A stretch of 64,000 nucleotides of DNA from Leucoraja erinacea. Its lineage: Eukaryota. This document shows, one piece after another, positions 4,408 through 61,445 of this stretch (position 1 is the first letter of the stretch; each line of letters starts with the position of its first letter). Both the position numbers and the translations under genes were made by a program. The stretch lies in NCBI RefSeq assembly GCF_028641065.1, contig NC_073393.1, forward strand, positions 16,120,001 through 16,184,000, read 5' to 3'. The notes under the pieces are model-generated. The model searched no databases. It was not told the DNA's origin and was given only the letters and a program-made list of their open reading frames with translations.

Positions 4408-7299
4408 TTAGAAGTTGTTCATCCAGAGTTGAACACACGTCTCGGCATCTGCATACAATGGTGTCTGTTCTTGTGCTTCTAGTGCGTGGTGGTGGAAAGA
4501 TTGGTGGAAACAGGGCCGCGACGTGAACGCTCCTTCCTTGACCCCATTGCATACTTGGTAGATTGAAAGTGTTATCACTGCACTCTGCTTAATATCCGTC
4601 GGCTTCGGCACCACTACCGAATTTCGGTGAATTCAGTAACCGATGGAGACAACAAAAATATACGACGATTGAAACATTGACATGGGAAGATGTAAGATTT
4701 ATATCTTGAGATTTATTTTTGTCATTGTTAATGGTCAGTTTTATTCTCAATGGTGTTATTGTTTTACAATCGAATAGCATTTACTGCCCTTGTTTTTTTT
4801 AACCACCATTATGGTTAAGACCGAGAATACCGTAAGATGTGTATCATTCTCACCATTTTGTGTCTTTAATTGGAGCCTTATCAAGATAATGGCCAAAACT
4901 AAAACTGCCAAGCCACCCACTGCGCATCCGATAATTAGGTTTTTATCTGCATCTTATGGATCAAGAGAGAAACAGGGGAAATGTGAACGACATAATATAT
5001 AGAAATATATACACATTTAGGAATTTAGCGATAACATTTGTGATTTTGAAACATTGATCTCTCATTACGAATAAACACGGGTCGTATCTAGCCATTGTCC
5101 CCGTGTTTGAGCAGCTGTATATTTAAATTCTAACCAGGTTGGACATATACACCCGCTCTTGTCTGCAAGTAATTACAATCTTACCTTTTTTGACGGTGTA
5201 GCTAAGAGCTGCTGGCACCTCAAGGGAAACATGATATACCAAGCAGGTGTAAACGGCGTCGCCCCAAGCAAGTTTAATTCCTTCCAAAAAACTGGAAACC
5301 TCATACAATCCTTCTGCGCTTCTATTTTTTACCGTTTCTATTCCGGTCAGAATTTCTTCGTTATTTCTCCGCCAGGAGATTTCTATTTTTTCCGGATAAA
5401 AGCTCGCCGTTTTACACACAAGTTTCCGAGACTGCGATGAAGTTCCTTTAACCGGGATGATTTTCAACGGAGTCGGTGTAGCTTTAACAGAGAGACAAAT
5501 ATATTATGTATTTTGTTTCCTTGGAATGGATGTTCACTCGCTTGTCTCACTTGAGAATTATATCACAATGTTATTATGACGCGTTAACCGCGCTATTGTT
5601 TGAACCGTTTTAAGTTGTCCTATTGTTATAAACTGGTCTCTCGTCGGCAGGAAAGTGACGGGGTAAATTAAAAGCACAAATAATGCGAGTCTATCAACTA
5701 GTGACCCATAAGAAAGGCGCCGCTGCTCTAAATAGGAGTATAAGAGTTAACGCGGGCGAAATTGGTATTAGACATTTGTGTTTCCCTCAAAACGAGGTGA
5801 TTTGTCGAGCTGTTTTAATTTCAGAGATTGCCACGGGAACAAAATGAAATTGTCACAGCTATCTATAATCAAGTGGTTGGGTGCGGCTGAAAACTGGGTC
5901 CTTGCGAGTGTTTGGGCAGTACTGTATTTTAATGCGCGGGGTGAAGGTTTACGAGGGTACAAATTTCATCAGGATAAATGTTTCCCGAACGCGAAGGGAA
6001 TGCTGAATATTTCTCAATCTGGGGAAGTGGCACACTGGAAGTTGAGCGTCGCTAAATAAATCATCACACGCACTGAAGTGGGGGAACTGAACATGCTCCT
6101 TCCCCCATGTTGGAATAACTCAGCGAATCGGCTAGCATCTTTGGAGGTATTGGACGGGTGACATTTCGGGTCGGGACATTTCCTTGGAAAACGTTGTTCC
6201 AGTACTTTTATTTAGCTCCAGGATAAAAACAACTTTCGTTTCTCGCTTGAAAACTACCACACACATCTGCCCAGTATGAACATTTACGAAAATATTCCAT
6301 GCGCAATTTGAAGCCGCGTATCCAAACAGATGCAAATGCAATTCTAACAACATTTCAAAATCAGCACTTTGGATTTAAAGCAGATTCGAATATTATCGCG
6401 ATAATTCTAGACAGTAACACAGAATTGTGTAATATGAATCGACAGGGCTACGTCAACTTTGATGTAAAAATGACCAGGAGAAAAACGAAGAGACAAGCAG
6501 GACAAACTACTTCCCACGCGACGGATTCATCCCGACCGGTTGAATATTCCAGGTATCTACTGGTTTACATGAGTCTTGCACCCTCTGTATCAATATCTTT
6601 CAGCGTTATAAACTGAATTCGGTGTCACATGGCTCTTATTGAGTACCAATATTTTATTTTTCTCGCGATCACTGAGTTTTATCCCCATGGTATGGGGATG
6701 ATAACATGGACTTCCACTGAAAAGGATACTTACCGAATACAGCTAGCAGCGTGCCACTTCCATTTCCGAGAGGTTGTTGCTGCTGTTTGATATGACAATA
6801 ATATTTCCCGGAGTCTGCGATATTCACATTCAGCAGAGTGAACGAACCGCTGCCCTTGTTTATATTAAATTGCTTTCTGCTGTCTGGCCGTATAAATGCA
6901 TTCTCGCTCTCTCTCCACCAGTAGACATCAGGAATAACTTGTAATATGTGATATTTGCAGAAAATTGAAACATTTCCACCTACGGCTTCATGCAAAACAA
7001 TCGGGAATTGGTCCACTTTGCTTGACGTTACTCTGGCGCCTGCCCCCCAAAATAAGGAAGATCATGGGCAGCAGTTGGTTAAGGTGATAACATGCAAAAA
7101 CAAAGCACAAGAGACATAAAATACAGAAATAAAATTACGATCCAGCATACGTCGAATTCGACAGGGATTACAATCAAGTATGTCGTGCCTGATTAAGGTG
7201 AACATTTCCAAATTAAGATTTTGTATTCAGGAAAATAAGCGTACCTTGCCAAACTATACTCAAGAAAGCCATGCAGCTAACTGCAACCTCCGCAGACAT
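4408..7299 (-). CDS. IgSF receptor gene A: leader + VJ-type V domain + C1-set domain + TM + cytoplasmic tail (~300 aa; SIRP/NKp30/VJ-C1-like)
   Basis: Phase-1 exons with GT/AG ends. Leader 7299-7245 (MSAEVAVSCMAFLSIVWQ). V 7039-6734 (FC..YWWR..DSGKYYC..GNGSGTLLAV). C1 5481-5185 (LVCKTASFYP..ISW..YTCLVYHVSL). TM 4952-4854 (NLIIGCAVGGLAVLVLAIILIR). Provisional tail 4553-4408. Joined length 903 nt with no internal stop. Confidence 0.85.
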
Positions 7300-7660
7300 A
7301 CTACAGAGAGAGGGTTTACCACGGCAAAAGAAAATGGTGTCCTCAAAGTGTGTTCAATAATTAAAATTTCATTACTGTATGTATAAAGCATGCGTTGCCC
7401 ACAACGGACATCACATGACAGTGCAATAGATTTCACTACATTTCTGCTTGGTCGATATAAGATGTCAGGGTTAGGTCTCCTCCCACCGCCAATTGGGTTT
7501 TTTTTCCATTTTTCCGGGAACTGCGTTCAAAAATCTAACTTACCCCATTTAATCACTCGTTCGCCATCTTCTCGATTCTGAACATATGATACGAGCTAGA
7601 GCTATGGACCAGCCTTCAACACATAACTGAAAGGACGGTCCATAGAGGAGCAGGGATAGT

Positions 7661-7670
7661 GGGGATTTCC
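7661..7670. promoter_or_regulatory. Putative NF-kB site upstream of gene A
   Basis: GGGGATTTCC matches the GGGRNNYYCC consensus, ~360 bp 5' of the gene A ATG. Motif match only. Confidence 0.3.
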
Positions 7671-8105
7671 AAGCATTCCTCTCGGTGTACACTTGGGGAT
7701 ACAAGTTTCTAGTTTATTTCATCTTCTTTCACCTCTGGGAACGTGAAAGCCTTTAGGCAAATCATTCACTTCACTCCAAGTTAAAAACAAAGAAGCGGGG
7801 CCAGTCGGGCTTTTCACCCGAAGAAAAGGTGAAGGTCTCTCCCCCTTCAATGAGCTCTGTAATGTAACTCGATGAAAATGATAAGTTTGCTACTGTTTTT
7901 TTTCTGTTGAGTTTAATTGTGTTGCTTGATATTATCAAATGTTAAATAGTCAACAGATAGAATCAAAAGTATAAAGCTATACCGCACAGAATCTAGCTAC
8001 TTGGGCCCAACTCGGCCATTGCCTAACCAACCTAGTCCCACTTACCTGCCACTTCTATGTCACTCCAAAAACATTCCTGCACAAATATATTTAAATATCA
8101 ATATG

Positions 8106-8137
<32 letters not shown>

Positions 8138-11250: not shown

Positions 11251-11289
11251 ACAGGCTTTTCGGGCAAGATATCTCTTTCACATGCAAAA

Positions 11290-12087: not shown

Positions 12088-13350
12088 TTATGAAGGGGAA
12101 ATCAAGCTTGACTAAACTTCTATAGGTCTAACATTTTTTGGAGGATGTAACAAGTAGAATGGATAAGGGAGGGCAGTGTATGTGGTGTATCTGGACTTTC
12201 AAAAGCCTTTGACAAGGTCCCCCGCAAGAGACTGGTGTGCAAAATTAGAACATGGTACTGGGGGTAGGGTAGGATAGAGAACTTGTTGGCAGACAGTAAG
12301 CAAAGAGTAGGATTTCACAGGTCCTTTTCAGAATGGCAGGCAGTGACTAGTGGGGTGCCGCAAGGCTCGGTGCTGGGCCCCCAGTTATTTACGATATATT
12401 AAAGTTTTGGCCGAGGGAATTAAATGTAACATCTCCACACAAAGCTGGGTGGCAGTGTGATCTGCGAGGAGGATGCTATGATACTGCAGGGTGACTTGGA
12501 TAGGTTGGGGGCGTGGGCTGATGCATGGCAGGTGCTCTGTAATGTAGATAAATGAGTCTTTATCCAATTTGGTGGCGAGAACAGCAATCAGATTATTAGT
12601 TCTGAATGGTGTCAGATTAGGAAAAGGGGAGGTGGAACGAGACCTGGGTGTGCTTGCACATCAGTCACTGAAAGTATGCATGCAGGTACAACAGGCAGTG
12701 AAAAAAGCTAATGGCATGTTGGCTGTTATTGCGAGAGGATTTGAGTTTAGAGGCAAAGAGGTTCTCCTGCAGTTGTTCAGGTCCCCGGTGAGACCGCACC
12801 GGGAGTATTGTGTGCAATTTTGGTCTCCCAATTTGAGGAAGGACGTTATGGCTATAGAGGGAGGGCACCATGGATTCGTTCCCCGGGTTAATTCCCGGAT
12901 GACGGGACTGACATATGATGAAATAATTGGTCGACTGGGTTTATATTTAGAAGGGCGAGAGAGAATCTTCTAAGAAGCATATACCATTCTTAAAGGATTG
13001 GGCAGGTTATATGCAGGAAACATGTTTCTGATGTTCGGAAAGTCCAGAACCAGGGGTCACAGTTTAACAATAAGCGGTGGGCCATTTAGGACTGAGATGA
13101 GGAACAACATTTTCACCCAAAGCGTTATGAATCTGTGGAATTCTCTGCCACAGAAGGCAATGGAGTTCAATTCACTGGATGTTTTCAAGAGAGTGTTAGA
13201 TTTAACTCTTAGAGCTAAAGGAATAAAGGGATAAGGGGAAAACGCAGGAATGGGGTACTGATTTTCGATGATCAGACATGATTATATTTTATGCCGGTGC
13301 TGACTCGAAGGGCCGAATGGCCATCTCCTGCACCTATTTTTCTATGTTTC
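12088..13350 (+). mobile_element. CR1/HER1-type LINE, 5'-truncated, frameshifted RT plus 3' tail
   Basis: ORFs ERDLGVL..QAVKKANGML..RPHREYCVQFWSP and [16 protein letters not shown]; ends GCACCTATTTTTCTATGTTTCTAT. Confidence 0.9.
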
Positions 13351-15070: not shown

Positions 15071-18000
15071 TTAAAACCGCGCATGCATAGATTGGTCTCC
15101 TTTCCTGTCAGTCACCCGGGGCGGCGGCGCCCAGACTGGTACGGCGACGTCCCTTCCGGCGCACCATCGCCGCACTGATTGGCCGTCTCCTCTGTCACGA
15201 TAAAGCTGAAGGAGCGGAGCGAGCAGTGTTTGTGCATCAGTGGAGTGCGGAGCGGCCCAAAGCCTGTCTGACTGCGAGGCCCACTGCTGCAACCTCTAGA
15301 CCTTGCGGAAGTGAGGAGGGAGAGTGGTGGATTGAGGGAGACGGGCACAGGTGGGGCCAGGGCTGGGCGCTGGGTGCTGGAGGGTCATTCCCCCCACAAC
15401 CCTTCCCCCGTCCATCCCCATCCTTTTGCATCCCACCCCCCTCAGCGGCAGTCCACGTCAGCGGCAGCAGTAGGCCACGGTAGAGGCATGCCATGGCAGC
15501 GGTAGGCCATAGCAGCGCCCCCTCCCCCACCAGCCCCCGCTGGCCCTCACCTGAAGCCACCCCACTCCATGGGCCGCTGAACGATCCTACCGGCCCTCCC
15601 TGAAACCATTCCCATCCTCACCTGCAGGGCACTCCCCCCCCCCCCCCCCCCCCCCCCCCCAGGTCAACCGACCCCCACCGGAACGATCCCCACGTGTCCC
15701 TGCCTGAAGCCGGTGGGTCGCGCCAGCAGTAGGCCATGACAGCAATAGGCCATGACAGCAATAGGCCATAAACAGAGGAAACATAGAAATTAGGTGCAGG
15801 AGTAGGCCATTCGGCCCTTCGAGCCTGCACCGCCATTCAATATGATCATGGCTGATCATCCAACTCAGTGTCCCGTACCTGCCTTCTCTCAATACCCCCT
15901 GATCCCCTTAGCCACAAGGGCCCACATCTAACTCCCTCTTAAATATAGCCAATGAACTGGCCTCAACTACCCTCTGTGGCAGAGAGTTCCAGAGATTCAC
16001 CACTCTCTGTGTGAAAAAAGTTCTTCTCATCTCGGTTTTAAAGGATTCCCCCCCTTATCCTTAAGCTGCGACCCCTTGTCCAGGACTTCCCTAACATCGG
16101 GAACAATCTTCCTGCATCTAACCTGTCCAACCCCTTAAGAATTTTGTAAGTTTCTATAAGATCCCCTCTCAATCTCCTAAATTCTAGAGAGTATAAACCA
16201 AGTATATCCAGTCTTTCTTCATAAGACAGTCCTGACATCCCAGGAATCAGTCTGGTGAACCGTCTCTGAACTCCCTCTATGGCAATAATGTCCTTCCTCA
16301 GATTTGGAGAACAAAACTGTACGCAGTACTCCAGGTGTGGTCTCACCAAGACCCTGTACAACTGCAGTAGAACCTCCCTGCTCCTATACTCAAATCCTTT
16401 TGCTATGAAAGTCAACATACCATTCGCTTTCTTTACTGCCTGCTGCACCTGTATGCCTACCTTCAATGACTGGTGTACCATGACACCCAGGTCTCGCTGC
16501 ATCTCCCCCTTTCCCAATCGGCCACCATTTAGATAATAGTCTGCTTTCCCGTTCTTGCCACCAAAATGGATAACCTCACATTTATCCACATTATACTGCA
16601 TTTGCCCACTCACCCAGCCTATCCAAGTCACCTTGCAGTCTCCTAGCATCCTCCTCACAGCTAACACTGCCCCCCAGCTTAGTGTCATCCACAAACTTGG
16701 AGATATTGCCTTCAATTCCCTCATCCAGATCATTAATATATATTGTAAATAGCTGGGGTCCCAGCACTGAGCCTTGCGGTACCCCACTAGTCACTGCCTG
16801 CCATTGTGAAAAGGATCCGTTTACTCCTACTCTTTGCTTCCTGTTTGCCAGCCAGTTCTCTATCCACATCAATACTGAACCCCCAATGCCTTGTGCTTTA
16901 AATTTGTATACTGTACTAATCTCTTATGTGGGACCTTGTCGAAAGCCTTCTGGAAGTCCAGATACACCACATCCACTGGTTTTTTCCCCCCTATCCACGC
17001 TACTAGTTACATCCTCGAAAAATTCTATAAGATTCGTCAGACATGATTTACCTTTCGTAAATCCATGCTGACTTTGTCCAATGATTTCACCACTTTCCAA
17101 ATGTGCTGCTATCCCATCTTTAATAACTGACTCTAGCAGTTTCCCCACTACCGATGTTAGACTAACTGGTCTGTAAATTCCCCATTTTCTCTCTCCCTCC
17201 CTTCTTAAAATGTGGGGTTACATTTGCTACCCGCCAATCTTCAGGAACTACTCCAGAATCTAAAGAGTTTTGAAAGATTATTACTAATGCATCCACTATT
17301 TCTGGAGCTACTTCCTTAACTACTCTGGGATGCAGCCTATCTGGCCCTGGGGATTTATCGGCCTTTAATCCATTCAATTTACCCAACACCACTTCCCGGC
17401 TAACCTGGATTTCACTCAATTCCTCCAACTCCTTTGACCCGCGGTCCCTGCTATTTCCGGCAAATTATTTATGTCTTCCTTAGTGAAGACGGAACCAAAG
17501 TAGTTATTCAATTGGTCCGCCATAACAGCGATAGGCTACAGCAGTGGCAGCAGCAGGCAACAGCAGTGGCAGGCACTGCAGCACGACCCCCCACGCCCCG
17601 CACTGGCCCTCGACAGCCCACACCTGAAGCCGTCCCCATCCCTCGGCTGCAGGAGACTCATTGTTTGGGATGAATGCCCAATCATTAGGAGGGAGAGCTT
17701 TGAAGCGGTGGACAAAACTCTTCAAGATGTAAACACCAACACTAAGCCTTTTGGCGGCATTCTTACCATTTGTTGTGGCGATTTTTGACAAATCCTTCCT
17801 GTAGTGAAAAGGGGAAATGATGCTGATGTTGAAAATTCCTGCATCAAGAAATCCGACGTGGAGACTTTTTACCAAGTTTCAATTGCAGACGAATATGCGA
17901 TTGAGAGAGGGAGAAGACGACTATTCTCAATTTTTGTTGAAAGTTGGAGAAGACGAGATTTTAAAGAATGAAGACGATGAAATTGAAATGCCAGAAGACA

Positions 18001-19378
18001 TGGTTCTATCAGCAAAAACACTGGAGGATTGTATTGATTTCATCTATCCCGCATTTGACATCCTGCAGAATTATTCTCCGACAATTGTATCCTGGTTCCG
18101 CACAATGATACAATGAGAAACATCAATTCTACATGTATCTATCAGACGCTTCCCTGAAATCATTAAGGAGTATTTTCTTTCATTGCTGTCACTTAGGGAA
18201 CTATTGCTACTCACTTCCCAACAGAATTCCTTGATTCACGCGAGATCTCTGGATTACCACCACACAAATTGTAGTTGAAAAAAGAATCTATGATCATGTT
18301 AATGAGAAACGTGGAACCCTCAAAGCTATGCAATTGAATGAGGATGATTGTGGAAGAGTGACACAATAATCTGATTGTTGCAAGAATCAACATGGGAGCC
18401 TTCAAAGATGACATTGTTCTCATTCCGAGGATAATGCTCAATTTGACATTCCCCTTCAGTGGAGCCAATTCCCGATTCTGTCAAGTTTTGCTATGACGAT
18501 CCGTAAAAAGCAAGGACAAACCATGGAGAACGTGTTGATATACCTCGCGAAACTGATATTTCAGCATGGACTACTAATGTGGCTCTTAGCTGAGGAAAGG
18601 TGAAGGAAAATGTCAGAGTATTTCTGAAGGATGGAACATCGACCAAGAATGTTCATTAAACACGTGCTTGGTTGAACGATGACTTCTGAGTTAATTCTCA
18701 GATTTTCTTCATGTTAAAGTTTGACCATTCAATAATGTCTCTATATTAAAACTGTGTCTTTTTTTCATCAACAGCAAAGCGACATTGAGACGCAGTGAGC
18801 AACAAAACGGAACAAGAGATGCAGCAAGAACTGACCTCAATAAATCTCATCTTTAACTTTAAAATTGTTGTTATATTTTAAGAGTTATTAACATTTTAAG
18901 CTTTAATAAATCCCTTTTCCACTTGCCGTGCCCATCAGCTGCGCATGCGCAGTAATAACTGCGTGTTCTACGTCAATGGGAACCCTATGGGCGGGAATGG
19001 CTGTACCGTCGGAGAGCTGCTAAGAGTGGATGGAGGGATTGAGGGGGGGGTGGAGTGAGTGCAAGGAGGGCGGGTGAAGGGCAAGTGGGGGGAGGGGAGG
19101 GGGGGGGGGATTGAGGGGAGGGAGGGGGTGCAAGAGGGGAGGTGGAGGGAGTGTGGGGAGGAGGAGGGGGGTTGAGGGGGAAGGAGGGTGAGGGGAGGTG
19201 GAGTGAGTGTGCGGAGGGGGGTGGAGGGGGTGGGGGGGGGGGGGGGGTGAGGGGGGGGTTGAGGGGGGATCGGAGGGGGGGGGGACAACGGGAACCCGTC
19301 AGCCGTGCCTGCGCAGTTGCGGGGCTATGGGTGAGTGGTGGAATATTGCGTTGGGGGACCAGGCCTCCCGCGCGACAC
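15071..19378 (+). mobile_element. Helitron remnant with pseudogenised PIF1-like helicase, interrupted by a LINE (15778-17520)
   Basis: 17648-18670 translates, with stops and shifts, to LIVWDECP..FEAVDKTLQD..KPFGG..GDF*QILPVV, LQTNMRL, PTEFLDS..SGLPPHKL, IMLMRN, VLIPRI, FAMTIRKKQGQT. These are Helitron helicase motifs. Outer boundaries approximate; no CTAG terminus seen. Confidence 0.75.
15778..17520 (-). mobile_element. Young CR1/HER1-type LINE (RT domain and 3' tail), nested in the Helitron
   Basis: Minus-strand ORFs [68 protein letters not shown]; tail AAACATAGAAA at 15779. Confidence 0.95.
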
Positions 19379-20123
19379 ATGGCTGGCAACATTTAATACA
19401 AATGTTAAGCCAATTTCAATACCAAAACCTGTTCTTCCAGAACAACAATTACCCTTGATGAGCTGCCCCTGAAACTCCAAACTTTGTGGCGATTGGATAA
19501 AGACACGTGACTCCAATTTAAATCTAATTTTCCTAATCCATATATGCACTCCCACGTTTTCACCGAACATAATTACACTGTCATCAAATTAATTTTTATA
19601 TTAATGGGGAAGTGATGCACCCTCGGGTTATCCTCCTACGTTCCAGTGCAGTTGTGACATTATGCATTTATTTCGGTGCCGCGAATTTCTTTGTCCGGTT
19701 TGAGCCAATGTGTATTTCATAACAAGCATTTCATAATACATCGAGTCATTGATGGCTTTGAAAGACAAATATTTTAGGTAAGTGAAAATATACTCGGTAT
19801 TAAAATTTGCGTAATTGTCGTTTTCTTACAAGGCATCATTTAGCGGCAACATATCACAAGCGGTCTTTGCGAGGTTTTGATCAAAACACAACAGCAAGTT
19901 GTAAAGAGCGAGAGCAGAATTTAAGTTGCAGCCTCTGGAAAAAAATGGACAATTTATGCAAAATAATATCCTGTGATGAAAATTATCCGTTCACTTCCCA
20001 GGATCGTAGGTGTAATAGAGATCACCAATTCTTAAAATGGCTGCAATAAACGATTATGAACCATACTACAAAACCTAATTCATTACTAATCTACAGCAGC
20101 GGCATGCATTTAGATTCTGGGCC

Positions 20124-27000: not shown

Positions 27001-27601
27001 AAATGACAGAGAACTGAAAATCTCTTAATTTTCGAACATGCACACTCACCGAGCACAGTGAGCAGACAGCCACTTCCATTCCCAATGTGTTGATTCTGGT
27101 GCTTTGCTTGACAGTAATATGTTCCCGAGTCTGCAACATTGACATTATGGAGAACAAATGTTCCGCTCCCGCTACCTACATGAAATTGTTTTCTCGTATC
27201 TGGTTCCAATGATGTTCTCATGCCTTCTCTCCACCAAAAAATGGAAATAGTATCTTGCGATATGGGAAATTTGCAGAACATGGTGAAGTTTGCACCGATG
27301 GGGACATCTGCATCATTAGGAAATTGATACACTGAGCTCGAAGATACTTCCACAACTGCCGAAAATTAAGTAAGACATTAGTTGCATTTACTGGATAAGG
27401 AACAAATAGCAGATTAATACAAAACAATCATGGAAGAAGGGCATCCAAATGGAAGGGGCATTTTTGCTACATCTGCCGGATGTAAACAGGAAAAAAATGT
27501 AAAATATGAATTGCAATTCAGGAACAACACAAATATCTAAACTCACCATGCCAAACTATACCACATAGCGCCATGTACCGTACAGGCAATTTCGCCAACA
27601 T
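21060..27601 (-). CDS. IgSF receptor gene B, paralogue of gene A: leader + VJ-type V + C1-set + TM + cytoplasmic tail with ITIM-like SDYIAI
   Basis: Leader 27601-27547 (MLAKLPVRYMALCGIVWH). V 27355-27050 (306 nt, same length as gene A). C1 26216-25923. TM 23606-23505 (SIILILTCVQGGLALIALLIIFAELMYK). 43-nt exon candidate 22882-22840 (GVIRNYMEANRVKN). Provisional tail 21181-21060. Ectodomain and TM exons are solid; the 3' end is uncertain. Confidence 0.8.
24575..24860 (-). mobile_element. tRNA-derived V-SINE (HE1-like)
   Basis: Reverse complement of the 40085-40375 copy: ACGCGGTCACGGGGAAAACGTACAAACTCCGTACAGAC; B-box-like GGTTCGACC on the minus strand. Confidence 0.75.
25340..25564 (+). mobile_element. 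LINE 3' end (Rex1/Babar-like) with (GACTT)n tail
   Basis: AGTTTCTTCCCACAGG-CATCAGG (SFFPQ.IR), ...ATGTGACAAATAA followed by GACTTGACTTGACTTGAC. Family assignment is inference. Confidence 0.5.
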
Positions 27602-28112
27602 ATTAGGAAAAGTGGCTTGTCCACTCGGTGTAAATGAATGTGGTTTATTTGCAAGTTTGTCTAGTAAATAGGATCTCTTGTATGGAACATGTGATCCTGA
27701 CGTCCGGTATCACATGATTAACGAGGCTTTCTGTAGGTTAGTGTATGTCTGAGGTACAATGCTCCCCCCACCCCTCGCCACTCTCGGGGTGGTTGCTTTT
27801 AAGTGATCTACATTTACATCCTCTATCAAACAACTTCCACATTTCCTGATTCTGAATTCACCGTTGTGATCATTGGCGTGAACTTTTTCCCACCCTTCAT
27901 ACAAGAGATAATTGTTCTTCAGTGGGGGCTGCCAAATATTAGTCACTGACACTTGTGACTGAGAGGACTTCCAATTTTCCCCAACTTCCATTAAAAAAAA
28001 AGGCTTGAAGCCGCTGGAGTCCAATTTTAATGTTATTGTTCGGTGGATTCTAAAGGGCTATTTCGAATAGCAACAAAACTGCAAAGTAAAACTGTCCAGA
28101 ATGACCAACGCT

Positions 28113-31023: not shown

Positions 31024-31321
31024 ATCAGTCAGCTATCTTCTTAAATGTTGCATGACATTCGTTCAATCTTTACAAGTATTCATTTCAATTTCTAAATATC
31101 ATTACTTTTGGAATAATATGCCTGACTTTGTTCCGATTAATTCCTTGAGGAAAGGGACTCAAGACCATGTCACTACCCTTGAAGGGTAGCGCAACGGCAA
31201 TAAGTCTGACAGAGCGTTCTATCTTTTCAAATTTCCCTTCTAGCGAAACTAACATGTTTACTCTAGCAATCAGGGTCACAGAGTCATAGACAGGTACAGC
31301 ACGGAAATATACCCATATTCC

Positions 31322-49300: not shown

Positions 49301-52300
49301 TATACTTGTGAAAGAGAAAGTACATTGAAAGTTTGCCATATTGATTCCTGGGCAGGAAGGTTTGTTTTATGGATATAGATTAAAGAGATGGGTCAATGAT
49401 TTCTTGAATTTGTGTGATCCCATTGAAATATACAACATTCTTACAAGCTTTAATAAGATAAACAAGGCTATAACAAAATCTCTGGTTGGGGTCTCTAGAA
49501 TCAAATCAGAGGTACAATGTGAGAGGTTAATCATTCAACACTGGCATAACAAATTTCTTGGCCAAGGATATAAATGATAAACTGAGACACTGTGTCCAAG
49601 ATAACTTTGGAGGCACAGATGCTTCACGTAAACAAGACAAAGATGGATTGATGTTAATTAAAAGCAAGGGTTAGTGCATGAGGTTTCGGCTAAATCAAAA
49701 GATCAGAAGCGATCTTGATAAGGATGTCATATCTAAAGGGATGTAATGGCCAGTTTATGTTTCTATTTCTTCCAACTGAGCAGGAAGTTGCATATTGATC
49801 GTGATGAGACATTGATCCTCTGTGACATGCTTTGTCTTAAAATGTTTCAGGAAGAAATACTTTATGAATGGATCAATCCAATTTACATGGATATGTCAGC
49901 TCAAGCGAACATCCAGGAGCAATTTGAAGAAAAATCTGAAATTCTTCTAAAGAATTTTTTCAAGGTAAGTGTGTGGCAGGCACTTATTTGGTTGAATTTA
50001 GAAAATACCGCACACACATGGATAGGAAAATGGATGTGAATCTGTCACCTTGTCCATGAAAAAGTCTTTGGAGTAAATTAATTTATTTGTTATAATGTCT
50101 CTGCTTTCACTGTTAATTGTTTTGTGACAATGATCACCCATAGATGTCATGTATTGGTGGTATCTACATCTGGTTGCTTTAGGAGGCTTTTTTAATTTCA
50201 TTCAATGCTGACAATCAGAACATTATAGAAACGCAAAGCTTTCTTGGCTATTGGAGTGCTACTGATAGCCATTGACAGTAAAAGGCTAAGACAGGCAAAT
50301 AATGTCAGGGGAAAAGTGGTTTTATCCCAAGTTCATGTGGAGAATTCATAATCTATTTAGATTATGTTAAGGGAATAGTCAACATAGAAAAAAGTTGTGA
50401 GCTGCTGTTGCTGTAGATTTAAAGTAATCTATGTGTTCTGTACATCTCACCTGCTGTGCAGTTAAAAAAAATTAAAATCATCTTTAATTCACCCTGTTTA
50501 TGTCAAACCACCTGTGGAGAGATCAAAGAAACAAGAATTCTAAAGGCCCAGGAATTTAATCTGGATTGCAAGATAATTATTTTGTTACGTCTTTTGGTTT
50601 TCTTTCAAATGGTCATTAGGGCAGCCATAAAATAAGATCCTTGAAGTCAGGAACTATTCCGAAACCAAAGAGGTGTATTGTATCAGATTTCAACGGTCAA
50701 CAAAATTCCTTTTTGGTTTTAAGTCAAGGTATTGGAGATACTTTTATTGACATTTCTGCTTCCGTGAGAGTATATTAAAAATAAATCACATTTACACAGC
50801 ACTTTTTTTTGGTCTTGGGAAGTCCTAAAGTGCTTCACATCTGCCTAGTGAAATATTATTGGAATAAATGGTGATAATCTAAAATAAAACAGAAAATATG
50901 GAAATACTTAACGGGTCAGGCTGCAACTGGGGCTAGGCCAACTGAGAATTTTCAGCATTTTCTATATTATTCTTACTGTTCACAAATAGATGTGTTTGCA
51001 TGATAATCTTATAAATGGCAAGCATGACTATATAATAGCTTATAGTAATATTATTTGATAGATTAATGTAACCAAGAGACATTAACCAAATAATTAAATA
51101 ATGTTAACCAAGAGACCTCCACTGCTCTGGTTTAAAAATTGCATTGGGATGTTTTGGTGTGACTCCGAGGCAGGCAGATGGGAGGGGACCATGATTAACA
51201 GCATCATCTGAAAAATAGAACCTCACAGATTGTAGTTTCTTCAAATCAGCACTGCCCTGTCAGCCCAGATTATTTAGAGCCATAATCAAAGAAACGGTCA
51301 TTTTACATAAAACGTCAACCCACTGGTTTATGTTGACAATCAGACTTTGACGTTTGTTCAAAGTTGTGGAGTGTAAATTAACAAAAGCTATGAAATGACA
51401 GCAATTAGAGGATGAGAATCCAAAATAAGAAAGAAATTAAGTTTCAAAATGTAAAATATTGTTAATGCAGGGATACCACAGACGATAACAGTAAAACAAA
51501 CATTTTTCTGCATTTTCTGATCAGAAAGAAAAATTTCAGATGGTATGTGAGGCTATATCTAACCCAAAGATTAAATGGAAGAGAAGAGGACCAGCCAACA
51601 AAAGGTAGGTGGATCAGAAATCTGAAGGATCGGCATTCATGAATATTAAAGATGTTGAATGATTTTTTTTTAATGCACTTATCAATGGAATACTTAACCC
51701 AGAAGCATCTGTGCAGAATTTACAGCAGGACTTTTCTGTAATGTTGTATTGCTCCAAAAATCAAGTGCACCTAAACCTGGAATGGAAGAGAATGGCAGTC
51801 ACCACATTTGCACTTCATTATTTCAGAAATAGAAAAATACATTATTTGTGCTACAGAATGCTTATCTAGGCTTGTAAAAGTTTCATCTTTTTTATCCCTC
51901 TCGTTTTCCTTCCACTTCATGAGATCATAGGAATCATGACCTGTTCACAGGCTCGCTCATTATATTGCTCAGGTGATTTAATGAGCCATGTTTGACCACT
52001 TTATCTAAAATTTCAATCTCTGCAGTAGTATGGTCTTTCAATGCTGCACAATTGTTTCCTTTTGTACAATAGAAGCTAACTTGAGCTTGTGCTCCTAGCA
52101 GATGAGTTGCCAGATGTGTTTAATGTATTTGTGAAATAAGTGACAAACCTTGTTATTGTTCAGAGATCTGGTCAGTTTTCCCTGGATTTGTGGCATGCTC
52201 TCTGATAGTGCCTCTCTGTTTCTTAGATGCTATGATCAAGCAGAGGAAGATGGCTTTCCTGACATTCTTGCCAAATGTATGAAGCTCTTTTATTCTGAGG

Positions 52301-55300
52301 CCATGTTCCTGCTTCTGTCCAATTTTACTGGCTTAAAGCTACATTTCCTGGCAGCCTCAGATGACGATGAAAAAGATGAGCAAGAAGATGACCTGGAGAT
52401 GTCTGATGAAAATGAGCAAGCATGCTCTAGCACTGAAAAGGATGAGAAATCAGATTCAACATTACTTAATGGCAATGATAGCAGAGGAGGCAGTGTACTT
52501 GAAACAACAGAAAAACCAATGCCAACGGACAGTCCACAAAGTAAGATTTATTTTTAAAATATTTATTTTTAGGGCTTGGCAGATGTCCTTACTTGGAACT
52601 ATGGCAGGTAAAAAATAATTGTTCAAGTTAGATGATATTAGTGAAGCTGGATTTTAACAAAATTGGATGTAATACTGGTTTTACACTGTCCAATATTGCT
52701 CCCCTTTGAATCCAACAGTGAATACAATTGGGTGGGTTTAAAGCGATCAACATGTCCAAGCCTTCTCAGTTAGTTAGAAGCAGACTACATTTTTATTTCT
52801 GTTTCTTAACTGTGAAATTTCAGAAATCAGTCTGATTACTGAAGGCACAGAAAAATGTTTAATGGAAACCTCATGGTGTGATGGTAGCAACTAAATGTGT
52901 GTTGGAGGATGCAGATATGTAACCAGTGAGGTTGATCAGAGGCATGATGAAGTTGAGTAAGTTGACAGTACCTGGACGTGCCACCGACGGACGAGAAACC
53001 GATGCAAAGAAGTCGAAGCCAAAGAACCGAATGGAAACGAGGCCGAAATGCCAAAAAACCAAAAGAGTACGAAGACGAAACACCAACTAACCGAAAGGAT
53101 GGGACGCCTAAATGCAAACTAACCGAAAGGGCGGATGCCTAAAAGCGAGAGGAGGAGAGAGAGAGAAGGGAGAGAGAGAGAGAAGGGAGAGATAGAGAAG
53201 GGAGAGATAGAGAAGGGAGATCGGGAAGGGGGAGAGAGAGGAGGAGAGAGAAGGAGGAGAGAGAGAAGGAGGAGAGAGAGAGAGAGAAGAGACAGAGAGA
53301 GGAGGGAGAGAGAGGGATGGGTGAGAGAGAAGGGGGGACGGCAGGGTGGGGGTCATTTTTCCACACAAGCCATAGGTGACTAGGCGGCCAAAGGCGCGCA
53401 TCCCTCGGGACAGCCCCCACTCTCCCACGTGCACCCACCGCGGGCTGTGGATCGAGTGGAGAGGAGGTGTGTGACAATGTTCATCCCTCCACAGTGATGT
53501 GATGGACACGGGGGTCTGGACCAATCGCTGACAAGTGATGTCCGTTATTGGACTTTTCTGCTTGTAGGAGACGCCGCCTTTCGAGTAGGTGGCATTTTGA
53601 CAGAGCAGCCATTTGGTGAGTTTGCTTTTAGGCGACGCAGCTTTTCGGTTAGTTGGCTTTTAGTAGCAATGTTACAAAATTTTGAGATTTAAAAAATCAA
53701 GTCTGCAATTTATCCCATCAGATAAAGCATAACAATAAGTTTAATTTGACACCAAATTCACTTTCATATCTCAAGTATTAAAAAAGTTATGACCATTTTC
53801 ATACTCGGAAATTAGCATCTTGTTCCCTATTGATTTTCAATGGACATTACAAAAAAGCTGTGATCTTGGATAGTCAAACGCCCATTTCTTAAGGAAAGAT
53901 TAACTTTTTTAAATAGCCTAAGTGTCCAAAGATTATTCACAAATAATTCACAATATAACATGATTTTTATATCTAATTTACATTAATTTATAGGCCAAAT
54001 GGAAGGAATTTAGTGTTCAATTGCTGTAAATAAATGCCCATTTAAATCGGCTTTCTAGTGGGTTCATGTGAACGCGCTGGTTTAGAACGTTGACATAGCG
54101 CTGGATTAGTGCCCTCAAATGCCGAGAAAAATACTGCGGGATATAAAAAGCCCAAAATGAACTATTCGTTATAGATAACTTGATGTTCAGGGTTATATAT
54201 ATGCCCCATTTAATGTAAAAATAAGGTACATACCTTTAATTGTTTGCTTTATAAAACCCTGGGGCTGCGAGAGGTTGCGAAATCAGAGAGTAATTTTAAA
54301 ACTATTATAACTATATTATCGAGGCCTATAAAACTAATAATACCTTTTGCGACCGGGTCTTGCAGCAATTTTTCGTTAATGATTTACTAGGCTGAACATG
54401 TGCGATTAGTACAGCCTAGTAAAAATCGCGTTTTAAACCCGCCCCCTCCAAACAGCGCCAAAATCGCGGACATGGCTGTGGGCAGATTCCCAATGACGAT
54501 TCAGGTAGGTTTTGTAACATACCTACTTTTAGGCGACCCATCCTTCTGGTTAGTTGCTGTTTCATCTTCGTACTCTTTCGGTTTTTTTTGGCATTCGGTT
54601 CTTTGGCTTTGACTTCTTTGCTTCGGCTTCTCGTCCGTCGGTGCCATGTCCGCACAGGCAAGTTGACACCTTATTTTAGATTACAGGAAATATTAGCTTC
54701 AATAGGATTTGCTGCAATTAGCAGTCAATCAACATACCACACAGTTAAAGTCAGCACAGATGTACTCAGTTGAACGTTGTGGATATTGACTTCATGCTGC
54801 ACAGTGAAATGGGAGAAGAAAGTTGTAGCTGAAGGTCATTCAGCAACAATTTAATACATTTGAGCAGCAGAGATCTTGGAGTAAAGCCAGAGCATCAATG
54901 TGTCTATTGATGAATATTGTGTGGCAACAAAATTAATAAATGATAAGATGGTAAAGTTAAAAATAACAATGGAGACATTGTTTGGTTCTTCACATACTCA
55001 ATGAAAAGCAAGTGAAAGAGTTTGAAGATGCATCAATCAATTCTTTTTCAGAGCCTGGTGTTCCTGTTTGCCGAGGAGAATTAAGACGTTGGAAAAATGG
55101 ATACTACACACTTATCCATGACACCAATGTGGAAAACACAGAATTTGCCCTGGACCTCTTGTTAAACTGCGGTTGTGAAGGTAAATGTGCTGATTTTAAT
55201 TTACAGGATATGTATTACACACCTGGTGTAATGCTGGATCACAACTTTGCTTTTGTTATACCATTGAGGGGAAGAGCAAAACATTCTATTGGAAAGTGCC

Positions 55301-56862
55301 AGCTTGTGATCGGATTAGGAAATTGAACATGTGTATTTCTCTGTTCCAGGCTGGGATGAGGAATTTGGTGGTGTCACTTCATACATTGCAAAAGGGGAAG
55401 ATGAAGAGGTAGGAACTGAATTAATTCAAATTAATTTCCTAAGGAGATTTAAAACGTTTGAATTAATATAGGCTTAATAAATGCTTACGCGCTGTACCTT
55501 GGTACTTGTGACACTAAAGGACCATTGAAGCATTAAATGTTATTTAGGAATCACAGTAACCAAGTCATGTTGCCTTTTGCATGCAAGTTCCAACAGACAT
55601 TGCATTCTGCAACGAATTAGACTGAATGCTGATACATCACGAGGATCAGTGTGTTACTCTCGTTATTTTTGAAGTAGATTATAGTTTTGATGGGAACTTC
55701 GGTATGATTAGTAAGTTTACAGATGGATTTTAATTTTGACAAGTGCAAGATGATGTATTTTTGGTCAGATAGATGCCGGACAATAAATGTTTGGGTGCAA
55801 ACGATGTTGATGAACAGAGGGACCTTGTGGTTTAAGCCCATAATTTACAGAGAGTAGAAATGCAGATAGTAAGTGTTGTATACAAGGCATGTTTGTCTTT
55901 ATAAATCAGTGGATATAAAGAAGAAGGGTTTCAACCTGAAACGTCACCTGTTCCTTTTCTCCAGAGATGCTGCCTGATCTCCAGCATTTTATGTTTATCT
56001 TCTGTAAAATATAAAAGTTAAAATGCTTTTCTTGCAATTTTACAAAACCTTACTTGAATTGTACTGGTCACAACATTACAGGAAGGATATGGTTACGCTG
56101 GAGATAGTGCAAATGTTGCCTGGATTGAAGTAGTTTAGTTATTGGATATTAATGATTAGATTTTTATTTTCTTGGAAGAAAAAGAGCCTGATAACTGACC
56201 TGCTAACGCTATATAAAGTTTATGGGCATAGGTAGCTATAATTATTTTCCCGTGGTGGGAAGTAATCAACACAAATGGATGTAAATATAAAATGGGATTT
56301 TAGTCAAAAGTTGTCTTTTACAGAATGCTGATTATTTAAATTTATGACCACAGGAGATAGTAATTATATTTGAGAGCCATTTAGAGAGATGTTGAAATAA
56401 GCAAAATAAGGATATGCACCTAATGTAGGCCATTAGCAATGATGCTGATGGCAAACAAAGAAATGGGGGGGGGGGGGCTGAATGACCCATTTCGGGCCTG
56501 CACTGTTCTTTAACTCTGAATCATATGGGAAGGCTCCCTGCATTGATCAGCAAGTATCTCAGCTGGATCCTATAGTTTGATCATGCACCCCCCAACTTTT
56601 TCATAAGAAAAACATAGGGAATCGTGGAGTGATGGAGAATAAATCGGGTGTTACTTTTCTATAACAAAATTCATTTTTAATTATTTATGTTGTATTTCAG
56701 TTACTTACTCTTTGTCCAGAAGACAACGCATTGGCATTGATCTACCGAGATAAAGAAACATTGAAATTTGTGAAACATATTAACCAGAAGAGCATCAATC
56801 AGTTTAACAAGAATAATAAGGGCTGTAGTTTCTGGGACATTTCCTTTGTGTATTATGAGTGA
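37132..56862 (+). CDS. OGFOD1: Prolyl 3-hydroxylase OGFOD1 (2-oxoglutarate/Fe(II) oxygenase acting on ribosomal RPS23), 13 exons, 546 aa
   Basis: Exons 37132-37282, 38918-39066, 40547-40593, 43059-43159, 44798-44914, 46619-46710, 47972-48097, 49851-49964, 51525-51604, 52227-52540, 55052-55180, 55350-55408, 56701-56862 join in frame (1641 nt). Recognisable peptides: [21 protein letters not shown] (HxD), [69 protein letters not shown]. Confidence 0.97.
37336..37745. mobile_element. Penelope-associated non-autonomous repeat(s) at the start of OGFOD1 intron 1
   Basis: GTGTAGGAAGGAACTGCAGAT..ACAAAATGCTGGAGTAACTCAGCGGGAC..GGGTGACGTTTCGGGTCGAGACCCTT, partly repeated at 37632 and again at 59110; shorter copies near 2430, 33620, 37940, 55925. 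Confidence 0.6.
39503..39792 (+). mobile_element. CR1/HER1-type LINE 3' fragment
   Basis: Near-identical to the reverse complement of 15780-16065. Confidence 0.9.
40085..40375 (+). mobile_element. tRNA-derived V-SINE (HE1-like)
   Basis: A-box-like GGCGCAGTGG, then core TGTATGGAGTTTGTACGTTCTCCCTGTGACCGCGTGGGTTT..CTCCCACATTCCAAAGAC and a LINE-like tail ending CTAAACTAAA. Confidence 0.8.
41055..41416 (-). mobile_element. CR1-type LINE 3' fragment, split by a DNA transposon (continues 42662-42722)
   Basis: CACCACCTTCTGTGTGGAAAAGTTGCC..CCTCTATAAGATC | ATAAGATCACCCCTC reads continuously once the insert is removed. Confidence 0.75.
41417..42661. mobile_element. Non-autonomous hAT-type DNA transposon (1245 bp)
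   Basis: Perfect 11-bp TIRs CAGGCACGTGC...GCACGTGCCTG and an 8-bp TSD ATAAGATC (41409-41416, 42662-42669). Confidence 0.85.
47513..47921. mobile_element. MITE-like element (Tc1/mariner-pogo type)
   Basis: Imperfect ~30-bp TIRs CAGGTCCACCACCAAGTTTCTAGCA / TGCCAGAAAGTTGATTGTAGACCTG; TA on the right flank, CA on the left. Confidence 0.5.
48396..48427. repeat. (ATTCA)n microsatellite following AATAAA, probable retroelement tail
   Basis: Six ATTCA units read directly. Confidence 0.8.
48900..49770 (+). mobile_element. Highly degenerate CR1-type LINE
   Basis: [28 protein letters not shown] remnant in ORF 49140-49328. Confidence 0.6.
53148..53338. repeat. Polypurine (GA-rich) low-complexity tract
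   Basis: ~190 nt almost entirely G/A. Confidence 0.9.
53662..54527. mobile_element. Nested TIR element inside the right arm of the 52968-54659 element
   Basis: TIRs AGTAGCAATGTTACAAAA / TTTTGTAACATACCTACT (16/18 match). Removing it restores GGCTTTTAGGCG, with an apparent TTT duplication. Confidence 0.7.
55700..56500 (+). mobile_element. Degenerate CR1-type LINE
   Basis: TTAGTAAGTTTACAGATG, GACAAGTGCAAGATGATGTATTTTTGG, TACAGGAAGGAT..AATGTTGCCTGGATTG remnants. Confidence 0.5.
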
Positions 56863-59107: not shown

Positions 59108-59510
59108 CAGGAAGGTAGACACAAAATACTGTAGTAACTCAGGGGGACAGGCACCAACTCTGGAGAGAAGGAATGGGTGACGTTTCGGGTCGAGACCCTT
59201 CTTCAGGCTAATGTCAGTGGAATGGGCGGGACATAGATAGAACGTAGTCGGAAACAGTAAGACTTGTGGGAGAACTGGGAAGGGGGATGCAGAGAGGGTG
59301 AAAGCAAGGGCTATTTGAAGTTAGATAAGTCAATGTTCATACCGCTGGGATGTAGCTGTCCAAGCGAAATATAAGGTGCTGTCTATCCAATATGCGCTGG
59401 GCCTCACTTTGAGAATGGAGAAGGCCCAGGACAGAAAAATCTGATTGGGAATGGGAGAGGGAGTTTAAGTCCTGAACAAGCGGGAGATCGGTTTTAGAGC
59501 ACGGAATGAG
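59108..59510 (-). mobile_element. Penelope-like element fragment
   Basis: Shares the terminal block with 37340 and the endonuclease-end sequence with 1211-1320 (TTGAAGTT-GA-A-GTCAAT-TTCATACCGCTG). Confidence 0.65.
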
Positions 59511-60832
59511 AACCGTTGTGAAATGTTGTCATTTACAGGATTTTGCTGCAAACTTGCTCTCTTAATCTCTGCTTGTTTCATATCTATTTTTATCTGAATT
59601 AATTTTAGAAACGATAACGACCCAAGTTCACAATGGCTATTGTGCAACACCAGTGAAATGTGTGAACATGTGAAATGTGTGAACATTTTGCATTCTGGAC
59701 CTGAGATACCACACACCTACCTTATATATTGTTGTTATGTGTTTTGAGCGTCAAAAATCAAGACAAGTGAACGTAAATGCATTGTGATGCTCTCAGTGTG
59801 TAAAAAGATAACACAAAAGTTAACTCCTGTTGATGACTTAATTTATTTATTTGAATATGTTAGTTAATAATAAATTATTCTTTACCTTGCAATGACAAGT
59901 TAACTCCTTGTTATCTTAAGCACCCATAAAGAATTTTGATTATTTTTATTCACTAAGACTTTTTGGAACAATGTGCAAAGCAAGCGATCCAAAAATTCCA
60001 GGAATGTAACTAGTTGTTTCAGATGTCAAATGACACAGATTTTTTCACAATTTGAATGTAAAACTGTAACACTTAGAATGGTTGTTTCCCCCAAATATAT
60101 TACAGCAAGAAGAAAGAGCAAGACGATGATCAAACCTTCCTTGGAGCAAATAAGTGAAATCACAGGATAGAGATGGGATTGTCCTTGCTACATATCAAGG
60201 TTTAAATTTGGAAATGATACACGTGTTTGAGTTTCAGCTGCCTCTAAAATATCCCTATTGTGGGGAACATTTCCGTTCAATGTAGCAATCACATCGCCTG
60301 GAGAATCTCGCAAGGGATACGCACAAGCACTGCATGCTGTGTTATCTGCTGAGGGTGAATGTAGAGCCTCTTGTACATTTGGCTTCCCGTGAAGTTAAAC
60401 ATATTTATTCAGCGCAGGAGCAGGACTCTGCAGATCATGGAGTCGAACAACAGAAAGTTGCTGAGCCACACAGCTCCCTGCCTTCACCCCTAACAATCCT
60501 GTCAACCCCACCCCCGCCACACACACCTTGTGATAAAAACTCTGCTTCAATGTGTTTTCGAATTCTTTGAATTAGCCTCAATTTCCATTTCCAGCAGCGA
60601 GCATCTTTCTTCGCAGATCTCAACTGACGTTTGACAGCACTGAAACCGCAAAGCTGCAAGTCTGACATTTAGTTTCGTTTGCACAATATACCCCGCCAAA
60701 AAAAAAGTCCCTCAACATACCGTTATTCCCACCCACCATCCCCAAACCAACGCAGCTGCGTGGCTCAATAACTTTCTGTTGTTCGACTCCGCGGTCTCTC
60801 GTGGCTCCTCAATTGCGAAGTCGGTACTCAGT

Positions 60833-61445
60833 ATGTATGGAAAAAATGAATTTAACCCCTTCCTCATTCTGGCCGTTATTTGCACAGGTATTCTTCAAAA
60901 ACACTTGCACATGAAGCGACGAGTTCACTTAGCAAACTAATGATCATTTGTTTTGTCGCTGTTTTTAATTCATTGTGTCAGGTCTTTGGAAGGTATCTGT
61001 TCATGTGGTGTTTGTACATTAAAGCAAGTCGCCATTTCCATGGATTTGTTAAAATTAACTGAAAGACGAGAAAGTTTGTTGTTGTCCTGAGCCTTTCGTA
61101 AATATACACACTGTTTTCCGTTTATTTTTGCAGCATTCGCCAAGGTTACGCAGGTGCATCAAATGCCGGATAAAGTCTATGCATTGGTAGGGCAGAACGC
61201 GACTTTGCAATGCGCGTTCGGGCTATTTAGAGATAAAAATAACATTAGGATGTATTGGTGGAAAACAGGAGAACGGAAGTTTTTCAAAGAGGGAGAAGAT
61301 TCCAGGAAAGTGTTCCAGGTGGAATCAAAAGCGAGCGCTTCGCTTAAGATTGTGAACGTGAGATTCGGAGACGCCGGAATCTATTACTGCAGAGTGGAGG
61401 GTGAATACACTGGAAATGGAACAGGTGCAACCCTTGAAGTAAAAG
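60833..61445 (+). CDS. IgSF gene C (partial): leader + VJ-type V exon, divergent relative of genes A/B
   Basis: Leader 60833-60887 (55 nt, MYGKNEFNPFLILAVICT, phase 1). V exon 61134-61445 (VHQMP..GQNATLQC..MYWWK..DSRKVF..DAGIYYC..GNGTGATLEV) with TTTGCAG/GTGAG ends. No C1 or TM exon recognised before 64000. Confidence 0.85.

Follow-up and report, generated by a model that had tools for sequence, protein, structure and literature searches.

A cluster of germline-joined VJ-C1 genes in the skate Leucoraja erinacea, probably part of a paired innate receptor family of cartilaginous fish

Introduction

Variable (V) domains that are joined to their J-like strand in the germline have been listed for NKp30, PRARP, SIRP, NITR, CD79 and CD8, and PRARP is cited among these as a VJ gene of the V-C1 type (PMC10751288, PMC11599192). 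The elasmobranchs among the cartilaginous fish also have UrIg, which is secreted and carries three constant (C) domains, and UrIg2, which carries nine or more (PMC12227049). Here we analyse a stretch of 64,000 nt from the skate Leucoraja erinacea (contig NC_073393.1, positions 16,120,001 to 16,184,000; hereafter the window, whose own positions and strands are used throughout), which holds three genes, A, B and C, each with a V exon of the germline-joined VJ type. Two of them continue into a C1-set exon and a transmembrane (TM) exon.

These genes are a further case of a known kind, the non-rearranging VJ-C1 gene, and not a new kind of system. From their exon plan, their relatives in other species and the tails of those relatives, we conclude that the window probably contains three members of a multigene family of paired innate immune receptors of cartilaginous fish, and not an antigen receptor.

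Results

An antigen-receptor-like exon plan without recombination signals

Exon models of genes A, B and C were read from the genomic letters, and the exons were searched singly, not joined. For whole-protein work, the natural database orthologues P0183, P0026 and P0094 served as stand-ins for the window proteins. Each of the three genes opens with a 55-nt leader exon ending in phase 1, followed by one exon that encodes an entire V domain including a J-like G strand (Table 1). Each J-like peptide closes a long open frame that shows C...W...YxC, the pattern expected of an immunoglobulin (Ig) domain. All junctions of the three genes are AG/GT and in phase 1. The split leader, V and C1-set exon plan of antigen receptors is present. 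The products are predicted to be type I membrane proteins, with A and B complete through the membrane anchor.

Family hidden Markov models (HMMs) for V and C1 were run over all six frames of the 64 kb. They recovered three V exons (120-126 bits), two C1 exons (132-137 bits) and no others, the rest of the window giving only noise; the exon matches are far beyond chance. Genes A and B share 49% identity in V and about 60% in C1, and their leaders match weakly (tblastn). Gene C is more distant, with a V domain 33-34% identical to those of A and B and 58% identical to that of the database protein P0101, in which the same type of leader is joined directly to the V domain. The family HMM found no C1 exon for gene C in 61446-64000, and the gene is cut by the end of the window.

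The three V exons run unbroken through the J-like G strand, with no germline separation of V and J. Recombination signal sequences (RSSs) were sought across the window as heptamer-spacer-nonamer pairs with spacers of 12 or 23 nt, each plus or minus 1, and the expected number was taken from shuffles; none was found at or beside any V exon. Separate V, J (or D) segments with RSSs, which define Ig and T cell receptor (TCR) loci, are thus found at none of the three V exons. Four RSS-like pairs occur in the window, at 119, 2009, 10229 and 46394, against 0.87 expected; all lie away from the Ig-domain exons, and they are probably A-rich chance matches.

A sequence-only reading of this DNA had described a cluster with the architecture of an antigen-receptor chain: a common 55-nt phase-1 leader exon, a V domain with its J-like strand in one exon of all three genes, C1-set and TM exons in A and B, and no RSS in the V exons. 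All of this was confirmed exon by exon (Table 1), and the cluster of VJ-C1-TM genes is real, if interrupted by OGFOD1 between B and C.

A family shared by sharks, rays and a chimaera

With the gene A V exon as query, phmmer found dozens of proteins of 220-450 aa among 1.84 billion cluster representatives, each with a single N-terminal V match at 35-58% identity. The members that were looked up came from sharks (Heterodontus, Scyliorhinus, Chiloscyllium, Mustelus, Carcharodon and Heptranchias), rays (Hypanus, Mobula, Narcine, Hemitrygon and Pristis) and the chimaera Callorhinchus. Searches were also made with three other queries: a full-length ray member, a V-only isoform from a shark and a family profile of 68 sequences. 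Each gave chondrichthyan proteins only, the lowest family-profile match scoring 170 bits. No family member from a bony vertebrate appeared in the phmmer and profile searches, although word-indexed searches can overlook distant ones. Outside the chondrichthyans, the nearest V matches were to proteins with several V domains: those of frogs, of which one is named NCR3, and reptile receptors with immunoreceptor tyrosine-based inhibitory motifs (ITIMs). Both lack a C1 domain and scored much lower per domain.

The family numbers about 80 predicted proteins, and in several species many copies lie on one chromosome-sized sequence. Their automatic names are diverse: 'tyrosine-protein phosphatase non-receptor type substrate 1-like' (that is, SIRP-alpha), 'natural cytotoxicity triggering receptor 3 ligand 1-like' (B7-H6), 'immunoglobulin lambda-1 light chain-like', 'tapasin-related protein-like', 'HLA class II DO beta-like', 'M1-specific T cell receptor beta chain-like', 'CD276 homolog' and 'PD-L1-like'. 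In domain trees, A and B fall in an elasmobranch clade that is expanded in rays, with A beside sequences of Pristis, Narcine, Hypanus and Mobula. Gene C and P0101 form a separate long branch, and the Callorhinchus sequences lie in other clades. Judged from these sequences, the family is older than at least the split between sharks and rays, and probably older than the split from chimaeras.

The members share a near-invariant V framework. At least 90% of them retain C28, W41, R55, D76, G78, Y80, C82, G94, G96 and V101, and 82% retain W42; entropy is highest at positions 29-40, 44-52 and 83-93, corresponding to the BC, C-C' and FG loops. All three V exons of the window carry the family motifs ..VxQxP.., NV[ST], WW, DSGxYYC and GNG[ST]G..L.V. 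Likewise, the C1 exons of A and B carry the PTPL start, ..CKTAxFYP.., the W and VYTCLVxHxSLxxPA. Gene A shares 68% identity in V and 75% in C1 with the Pristis orthologue P0183, and 59% identity in V with the Hemitrygon orthologue P0184.

Three kinds of cytoplasmic tail

The reading as paired innate receptors is based on the presence of three tail types in the one family. In about 29 of the roughly 80 members the tail is 60-150 residues long and contains one or more ITIMs (typically ..LTYAxLxL..), often together with TxYxxV, which resembles an immunoreceptor tyrosine-based switch motif (ITSM). About a dozen have a short tail and a membrane span that contains an Arg and, at the inner end, a D/E-H pair. 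Other members, including the gene A orthologues, have short uncharged tails, and soluble isoforms are also predicted. In the shark short-tail members P0021, P0057, P0061, P0068 and P0186, the Arg lies near the outer end of the span, e.g. PRLVLGFLIILGLLGIIVDH, and this conserved charged-TM signature suggests an adaptor partner.

Four database proteins (P0094, P0097, P0023 and P0200) are predicted V-TM-ITIM forms that lack the C1 domain, and those looked up are annotated as isoforms; the locus of P0094 also yields a longer isoform with C1, P0098. If this is true, skipping of the C1 exon would give NKp30-like products from V-C1 genes.

The membrane span of gene A is uncharged and matches that of P0183 and P0184, which stop 3-8 residues past it, and by orthology gene A is assigned to the short uncharged type. 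The span of gene B is also uncharged and matches TM exons of rays (E down to 1.5e-05); a degenerate ITIM-like candidate exon of this gene aligns to a Narcine tail, ..KLTYASLQLQKSNKTTA, at E 0.097. A Cys stands at the outer edge of the span in A (4854-4952), B (23505-23606) and homologues (..IIGCAVGG../..ILTCVQGG../..FGCAGG..) and is kept in many, not all, family members; it could serve as an interchain disulfide or an acylation site.

Downstream of gene A, the segment 3636-3500 resembles the Heterodontus tail ..KSAVYAEVNVIKKERS weakly (47% over 19 aa, E 0.11, tblastn) and is best read, by this likeness, as a putative remnant of the usual C-terminal tail exon of the family. Spliced in phase 1 to the gene A TM exon, it would encode Asp and then a stop. 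The open frame at 4613-4408, which had been taken for the last exon of gene A and gave the cluster its start at 4408, has an acceptor with a poor pyrimidine tract. We regard this exon as doubtful because most of the frame lies inside a very high-copy retroelement, described below.

Profile and structure comparison with described systems

The yardstick for known families was a library of solved structures, of which the best 60 chains were considered for the V profile and the V-C1 unit. With the V profile, shark VNAR came top among single V domains (54.7 bits), and NKp30, SIRP and B7-H6 were absent from the best 60 chains. The C1 profile placed UrIg2 first (74 bits, two domains summed), followed by Ig constant domains, MHC (major histocompatibility complex) class II beta-2 (45-47 bits) and the B7-H6 C domain (about 44 bits). 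Over V and C1 in a single alignment, the whole-family profile scored Ig light chains highest (85-89 bits), followed by domains 1-2 of SIRP-alpha (61.9 bits) and UrIg2 (57.5 bits).

AlphaFold (AF2) models of the Pristis orthologue P0183 and of the gene A V exon had a predicted local distance difference test (pLDDT) score of 90.5 and 91.5, respectively. In both, strands C and D are connected by just one bridging residue, and therefore there is no C'' strand, and the G strand has a G-x-G bulge. Structurally, the V domain matched skate VNAR best (Z 15.1, root-mean-square deviation (rmsd) 1.9, 96 of 104 residues, 21% identity), with NCAM, CD79b and TCR and Ig V domains within 2 Z units of it; the modelled likeness to VNAR is a resemblance in shape, with a lead under 2 Z units, and is not to be read as ancestry. 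For the C1 domain the top match was MHC class II beta-2 (Z 15.6, with rmsd 1.9 over 96 residues). For the V-C1 model of P0183 the best match was B7-H6 (Z 15.5, 184 residues, rmsd 3.4 Å); B7-H6, PD-L2 and butyrophilins all fitted at Z of about 15 and rmsd 2.6-3.4 over 180-187 residues, whereas Fab light chains fitted only at rmsd 8-9 Å. Exon plan and sequence are thus antigen-receptor-like, the modelled V shape is VNAR- or I-set-like, and the elbow of the monomer model is B7-like.

Ig light chains and other rearranging chains share the split leader, the J-type G strand, the C1-set domain and phase-1 introns with the family. They differ from it in having RSSs and separate J segments, and in having F or W before G-x-G where the family has N or G; family members, unlike light chains, have a compact V without C'', a TM of their own and signalling tails. 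VNAR resembles the family V in being compact and lacking C'', and is its best match by both profile and structure, but it belongs to IgNAR or NAR-TCR chains and is put together by RAG from V, D and J segments. UrIg and UrIg2 are, like this family, genes of cartilaginous fish with a non-rearranging single-exon VJ, a split leader and C1 domains (PMC12227049). They are defined, however, by a VJ followed by at least three C1-type domains, where genes A and B have one C1 exon and then a TM exon. In addition, the UrIg2 V domain barely aligns to the family profile, and the UrIg and UrIg2 genes show linkage to the MHC or to the Ig/TCR complex, whereas the family locus here adjoins OGFOD1.

Of SIRP, NKp30, UrIg and B7, none shows its defining domain features here: SIRPs have two C1 domains, NKp30 has none, UrIg has at least three, and B7 has a non-J V. 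The earlier proposal of a diversified chondrichthyan receptor family is upheld by about 80 predicted proteins found in sharks, rays and a chimaera only. Nesting in a characterised family, which would have spoken against it, was looked for by profile comparison, and by this measure the family did not fall inside SIRP, NKp30, B7-H6 or UrIg. The reading as germline-joined VJ-C1-TM genes of such a family is supported.

Relationship to described receptor families

Could these be B7-H6 (NCR3LG1) or other B7-family genes of cartilaginous fish, that is, ligands shown to receptors on other cells? The V plus C ectodomain, TM and tail are common to both and to butyrophilins, many family members have been automatically named NCR3LG1-like, and A-type members have very short tails. 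The P0183 model finds its best two-domain match in B7-H6, with PD-L2 and butyrophilins within 1 Z unit, and the C1 profile covers the whole of the B7-H6 C domain. This extended V-C geometry is weak evidence, however, as it comes from a monomer AF2 model, and B7-H6 is missing from the best 60 chains both for the V profile and for the V-C1 unit, where Ig light chains and SIRP-alpha are found. A B7-type V has C'' and no G-x-G bulge; the family has a conserved G94-x-G96 of J type and a single C-D bridging residue. B7 V domains are not known to be built with a J-type G-x-G and a C''-less fold. Tails with ITIM or ITSM and variants with Arg in the TM are, moreover, features of paired receptors, and we consider a B7 identity unlikely.

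A second possibility is that the family has been described before, as nurse-shark NCR3 (NKp30) (Immunogenetics 2021) or as PRARP (J Immunol 2019). NKp30 and amphibian XMIV-type V genes have a non-rearranging VJ-type V, as here, V-only isoforms of family genes exist, the family V has a GNGTG motif, and the frog protein named NCR3 is among the nearest non-chondrichthyan V matches. The GNGTG motif resembles GTGNGT of NKp30. By description, PRARP genes are likewise non-rearranging VJ, C1 and TM genes, and PRARP has been cited as a VJ gene of V-C1 type (PMC10751288, PMC11599192). Against this, NKp30 lacks a C domain, whereas nearly all family genes, A and B among them, have a C1-set exon and the V-only forms that were looked up are listed as isoforms; human NKp30 is outside the best 60 solved V matches; and none of the roughly 80 database entries bears an author-given NCR3 or PRARP name. 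Shark NCR3 is reportedly linked to the MHC. The neighbour in the window is OGFOD1 and no MHC gene is present, though 64 kb is too short to judge linkage; a white-shark member lies on a 193.5-Mb sequence, which by its size is presumably not chromosome 19, where the MHC is located (PMC10751288). A previous description under either name therefore seems to us distinctly unlikely.

It is improbable that the family represents the signal-regulatory proteins of cartilaginous fish, whether as orthologues or as co-orthologues of SIRP. SIRP-alpha-like is the commonest automatic name. SIRP-alpha, -beta and -gamma also join a non-rearranging VJ-type V to C1-set domains and unite ITIM and activating-type members in one family, and the split into ITIM and activating-type TM forms mirrors SIRP-alpha and SIRP-beta. 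The family profile runs continuously over SIRP-alpha domains 1-2 and matches again in domain 3 (49.2 bits). SIRPs, however, have two C1 domains, against one in nearly all family proteins and one C1 exon in each of A and B. Their V topology differs, the family V lacking C'', they score below Ig light chains over the V-C1 unit, and they are outside the best 60 chains for the V-only profile. No synteny with a SIRP locus is visible in the window, where the neighbour is OGFOD1.

That the three window copies are unexpressed relics (pseudogenes) of the family is highly improbable: a sequencing-run search gave no RNA run with the locus, transposon fragments are abundant, the 3' region of gene A has a retroelement and just a degenerate tail-exon remnant, and the ITIM-like exon of gene B is degenerate too, but the leader, V, C1 and TM exons are all open, with ATG, canonical splice sites and conserved phases, all family-invariant residues are retained, the short tail of gene A agrees with the intact Pristis and Hemitrygon orthologue models, and DNA runs of three other organisms contain the locus at 90-99% identity.

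A high-copy retroelement with a putative HDV-like ribozyme in the 3' region of gene A

Contigs from four public DNA runs of other, related organisms were mapped to 4000-7700. Summed contig depth over about 4372-4619 was 2-5e5, against a baseline of 20-80, and hundreds of contigs end at 4382, 4468 and 4545-4548. The rise in depth together with the broken contigs identifies about 4372-4619 as a very high-copy interspersed repeat. No second copy of the repeat at 4382-4547 was found within the window.

On the minus strand, 4557-4494 matches the hepatitis delta virus (HDV)/CPEB3-type ribozyme (Rfam RF00622, gathering score 35) at 34.9 bits and E 7e-08, and its predicted cleavage site, 4546/4545, is the exact 5' boundary of the repeat, which begins with the ribozyme stretch 4545-4494. 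The helices P1 (6 bp), P2 (7 bp) and P3 pair fully, and P4 is almost absent. A core of 19 nt, AGCGUUCACGUCGCGGCCC, agrees letter for letter with the consensus of the mammalian CPEB3 ribozyme; P3 and L3 are identical to CPEB3, whereas P1 and P2 differ in letters. It is well established that retrotransposons can carry HDV-like ribozymes at their 5' ends (PMC3185411, PMC3774820, PMC4035085), and the repeat looks like a skate retroelement family whose processing depends on a minimal ribozyme of this type.

Genomic neighbourhood

The sole conserved neighbour in the window is OGFOD1, whose C-terminal exons contain open frames at 49737-50036 and 54967-55323 with Ofd1_CTDD matches (5.9e-07 and 0.0087, respectively). 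It provides a synteny anchor for the family locus; the human orthologue lies on 16q. No MHC, Ig or TCR gene was found within the window.

Transposon debris, reverse-transcriptase fragments among it, makes up most of the remaining window. Fragments of non-LTR (non-long terminal repeat) retrotransposon reverse transcriptase and related frames lie around gene B, at 31290-31955 (+; RVT_1 5e-23), 16041-16923 (-), 12548-12970 (+) and 28031-28414 (+). An open frame at 17808-18113 (+) resembles the C-terminal part of a PIF1/Helitron-type helicase, with no Pfam match at E <= 0.01, and overlapping proline-rich low-complexity frames of PPPPSP type occupy 18971-19392 (-), 3' of gene B.

Table 1. Features of the receptor genes and their surroundings, in window positions
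Feature	Position	Strand	Remarks
Gene A leader exon	7299-7245	-	55 nt, phase 1; ATG at 7299, donor g/gt at 7245/7244; MSAEVAVSCMAFLSIVWQ-
Gene A V exon	7039-6734	-	complete VJ-type V domain, ends ..GNGSGTLLAVF (GNGSGTLLAV at 6738-6767); Pfam V-set 2e-07; family V HMM 122 bits
Gene A C1-set exon	5481-5185	-	Pfam C1-set 9.7e-12; family C1 HMM 137 bits
Gene A TM exon	4952-4854	-	DADKNLIIGCAVGGLAVLVLAIILIRLQLKTQN; membrane span without charged residue
Supposed last exon of gene A	4613-4408	-	open frame, stop codon at 4408; doubtful, enters high-copy retroelement
Very high-copy retroelement, 5' part	4382-4547	-	from depth and contig ends; not part of the receptor family
Putative tail-exon remnant 3' of gene A	3636-3500	-	..KEKRVPYADGNVLMKERS; acceptor ttcacag/
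Gene B leader exon	27601-27547	-	55 nt, phase 1
Gene B V exon	27355-27050	-	ends ..GNGSGCLLTVL (GNGSGCLLTV at 27054-27083); Pfam V-set 1.9e-07; family V HMM 126 bits
Gene B C1-set exon	26216-25923	-	Pfam C1-set 4.1e-10; family C1 HMM 132 bits
Gene B TM exon	23606-23505	-	DPNSIILILTCVQGGLALIALLIIFAELMYKPLN; uncharged; matches ray TM exons
Candidate ITIM-type tail exon, gene B	20227-20156	-	..GIYDVIYLQLRKTKKTSAQ then stop / ..VIYLQLRKTKKTSAQ then stop; degenerate; phase unsettled
OGFOD1 C-terminal exons	49737-55323	+	between B and C; Pfam Ofd1_CTDD
Gene C leader exon	60833-60887	+	55 nt, phase 1; MYGKNEFNPFLILAVICT-
Gene C V exon	61134-61445	+	ends ..GNGTGATLEVK (GNGTGATLEV at 61412-61441); Pfam V-set 2.6e-10; family V HMM 120 bits

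Discussion

We propose that the three skate genes belong to a paired innate receptor family. The gene plan comprises a split leader, a compact germline-joined V (G-x-G-S/T-x-L-x-V), one C1-set domain, one TM and variable tail exons, all used without rearrangement. The membrane-distal V loops BC, C-C' and FG would bind ligand, as in SIRP, NITR and KIR-type families. Long tails with ITIM or ITSM would recruit SH2 phosphatases and inhibit the cell, by analogy with such motifs elsewhere, and short-tailed members with an Arg in the TM would pair with an adaptor bearing an immunoreceptor tyrosine-based activation motif (ITAM) and activate it. Short uncharged members, the type to which gene A is assigned, could be decoys, co-receptors or ligands.

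Several points weigh against this proposal. The functions are drawn from motif analogy. No RNA run containing the locus turned up in the sequencing-run search, and splicing and expression are predictions from the DNA. Within the window, neither A nor B has a clean ITIM, and the models of both are putative at their 3' ends. The restriction to cartilaginous fish is subject to the sensitivity of word-indexed searches, which may overlook distant bony-vertebrate relatives. The family could be a divergent branch of Ig, TCR, SIRP, PRARP, NCR3, B7-H6 or UrIg. It is also possible that it has already been named in literature beyond the coverage of our search: a text search on PRARP and elasmobranch SIRP found nothing on the family, and the shark NCR3, PRARP and B7H6 papers were outside its coverage.

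A more far-reaching idea is that, among non-rearranging genes still extant, the compact VJ may be the closest relative of the V exon from which the V domains of IgNAR and NAR-TCR arose or, more broadly, that the family may descend directly from the pre-RAG VJ-C1 membrane receptor. We think this a long shot; if true, an 'unsplit' version of an antigen-receptor chain, bound to the membrane, would survive in cartilaginous fish beside UrIg and UrIg2.

Non-rearranging VJ-C1 genes inform the origins of antibodies and TCRs, and each independent family narrows the pre-RAG ancestor. The present family occurs in all three main lineages of cartilaginous fish, under at least six unrelated, automatic database names. 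Its recognition as one family would correct the annotation of dozens of gene models and give a clean outgroup for V and C1 trees. It would also provide a candidate paired innate system in sharks and rays, where receptors of the natural killer (NK) type are poorly known.

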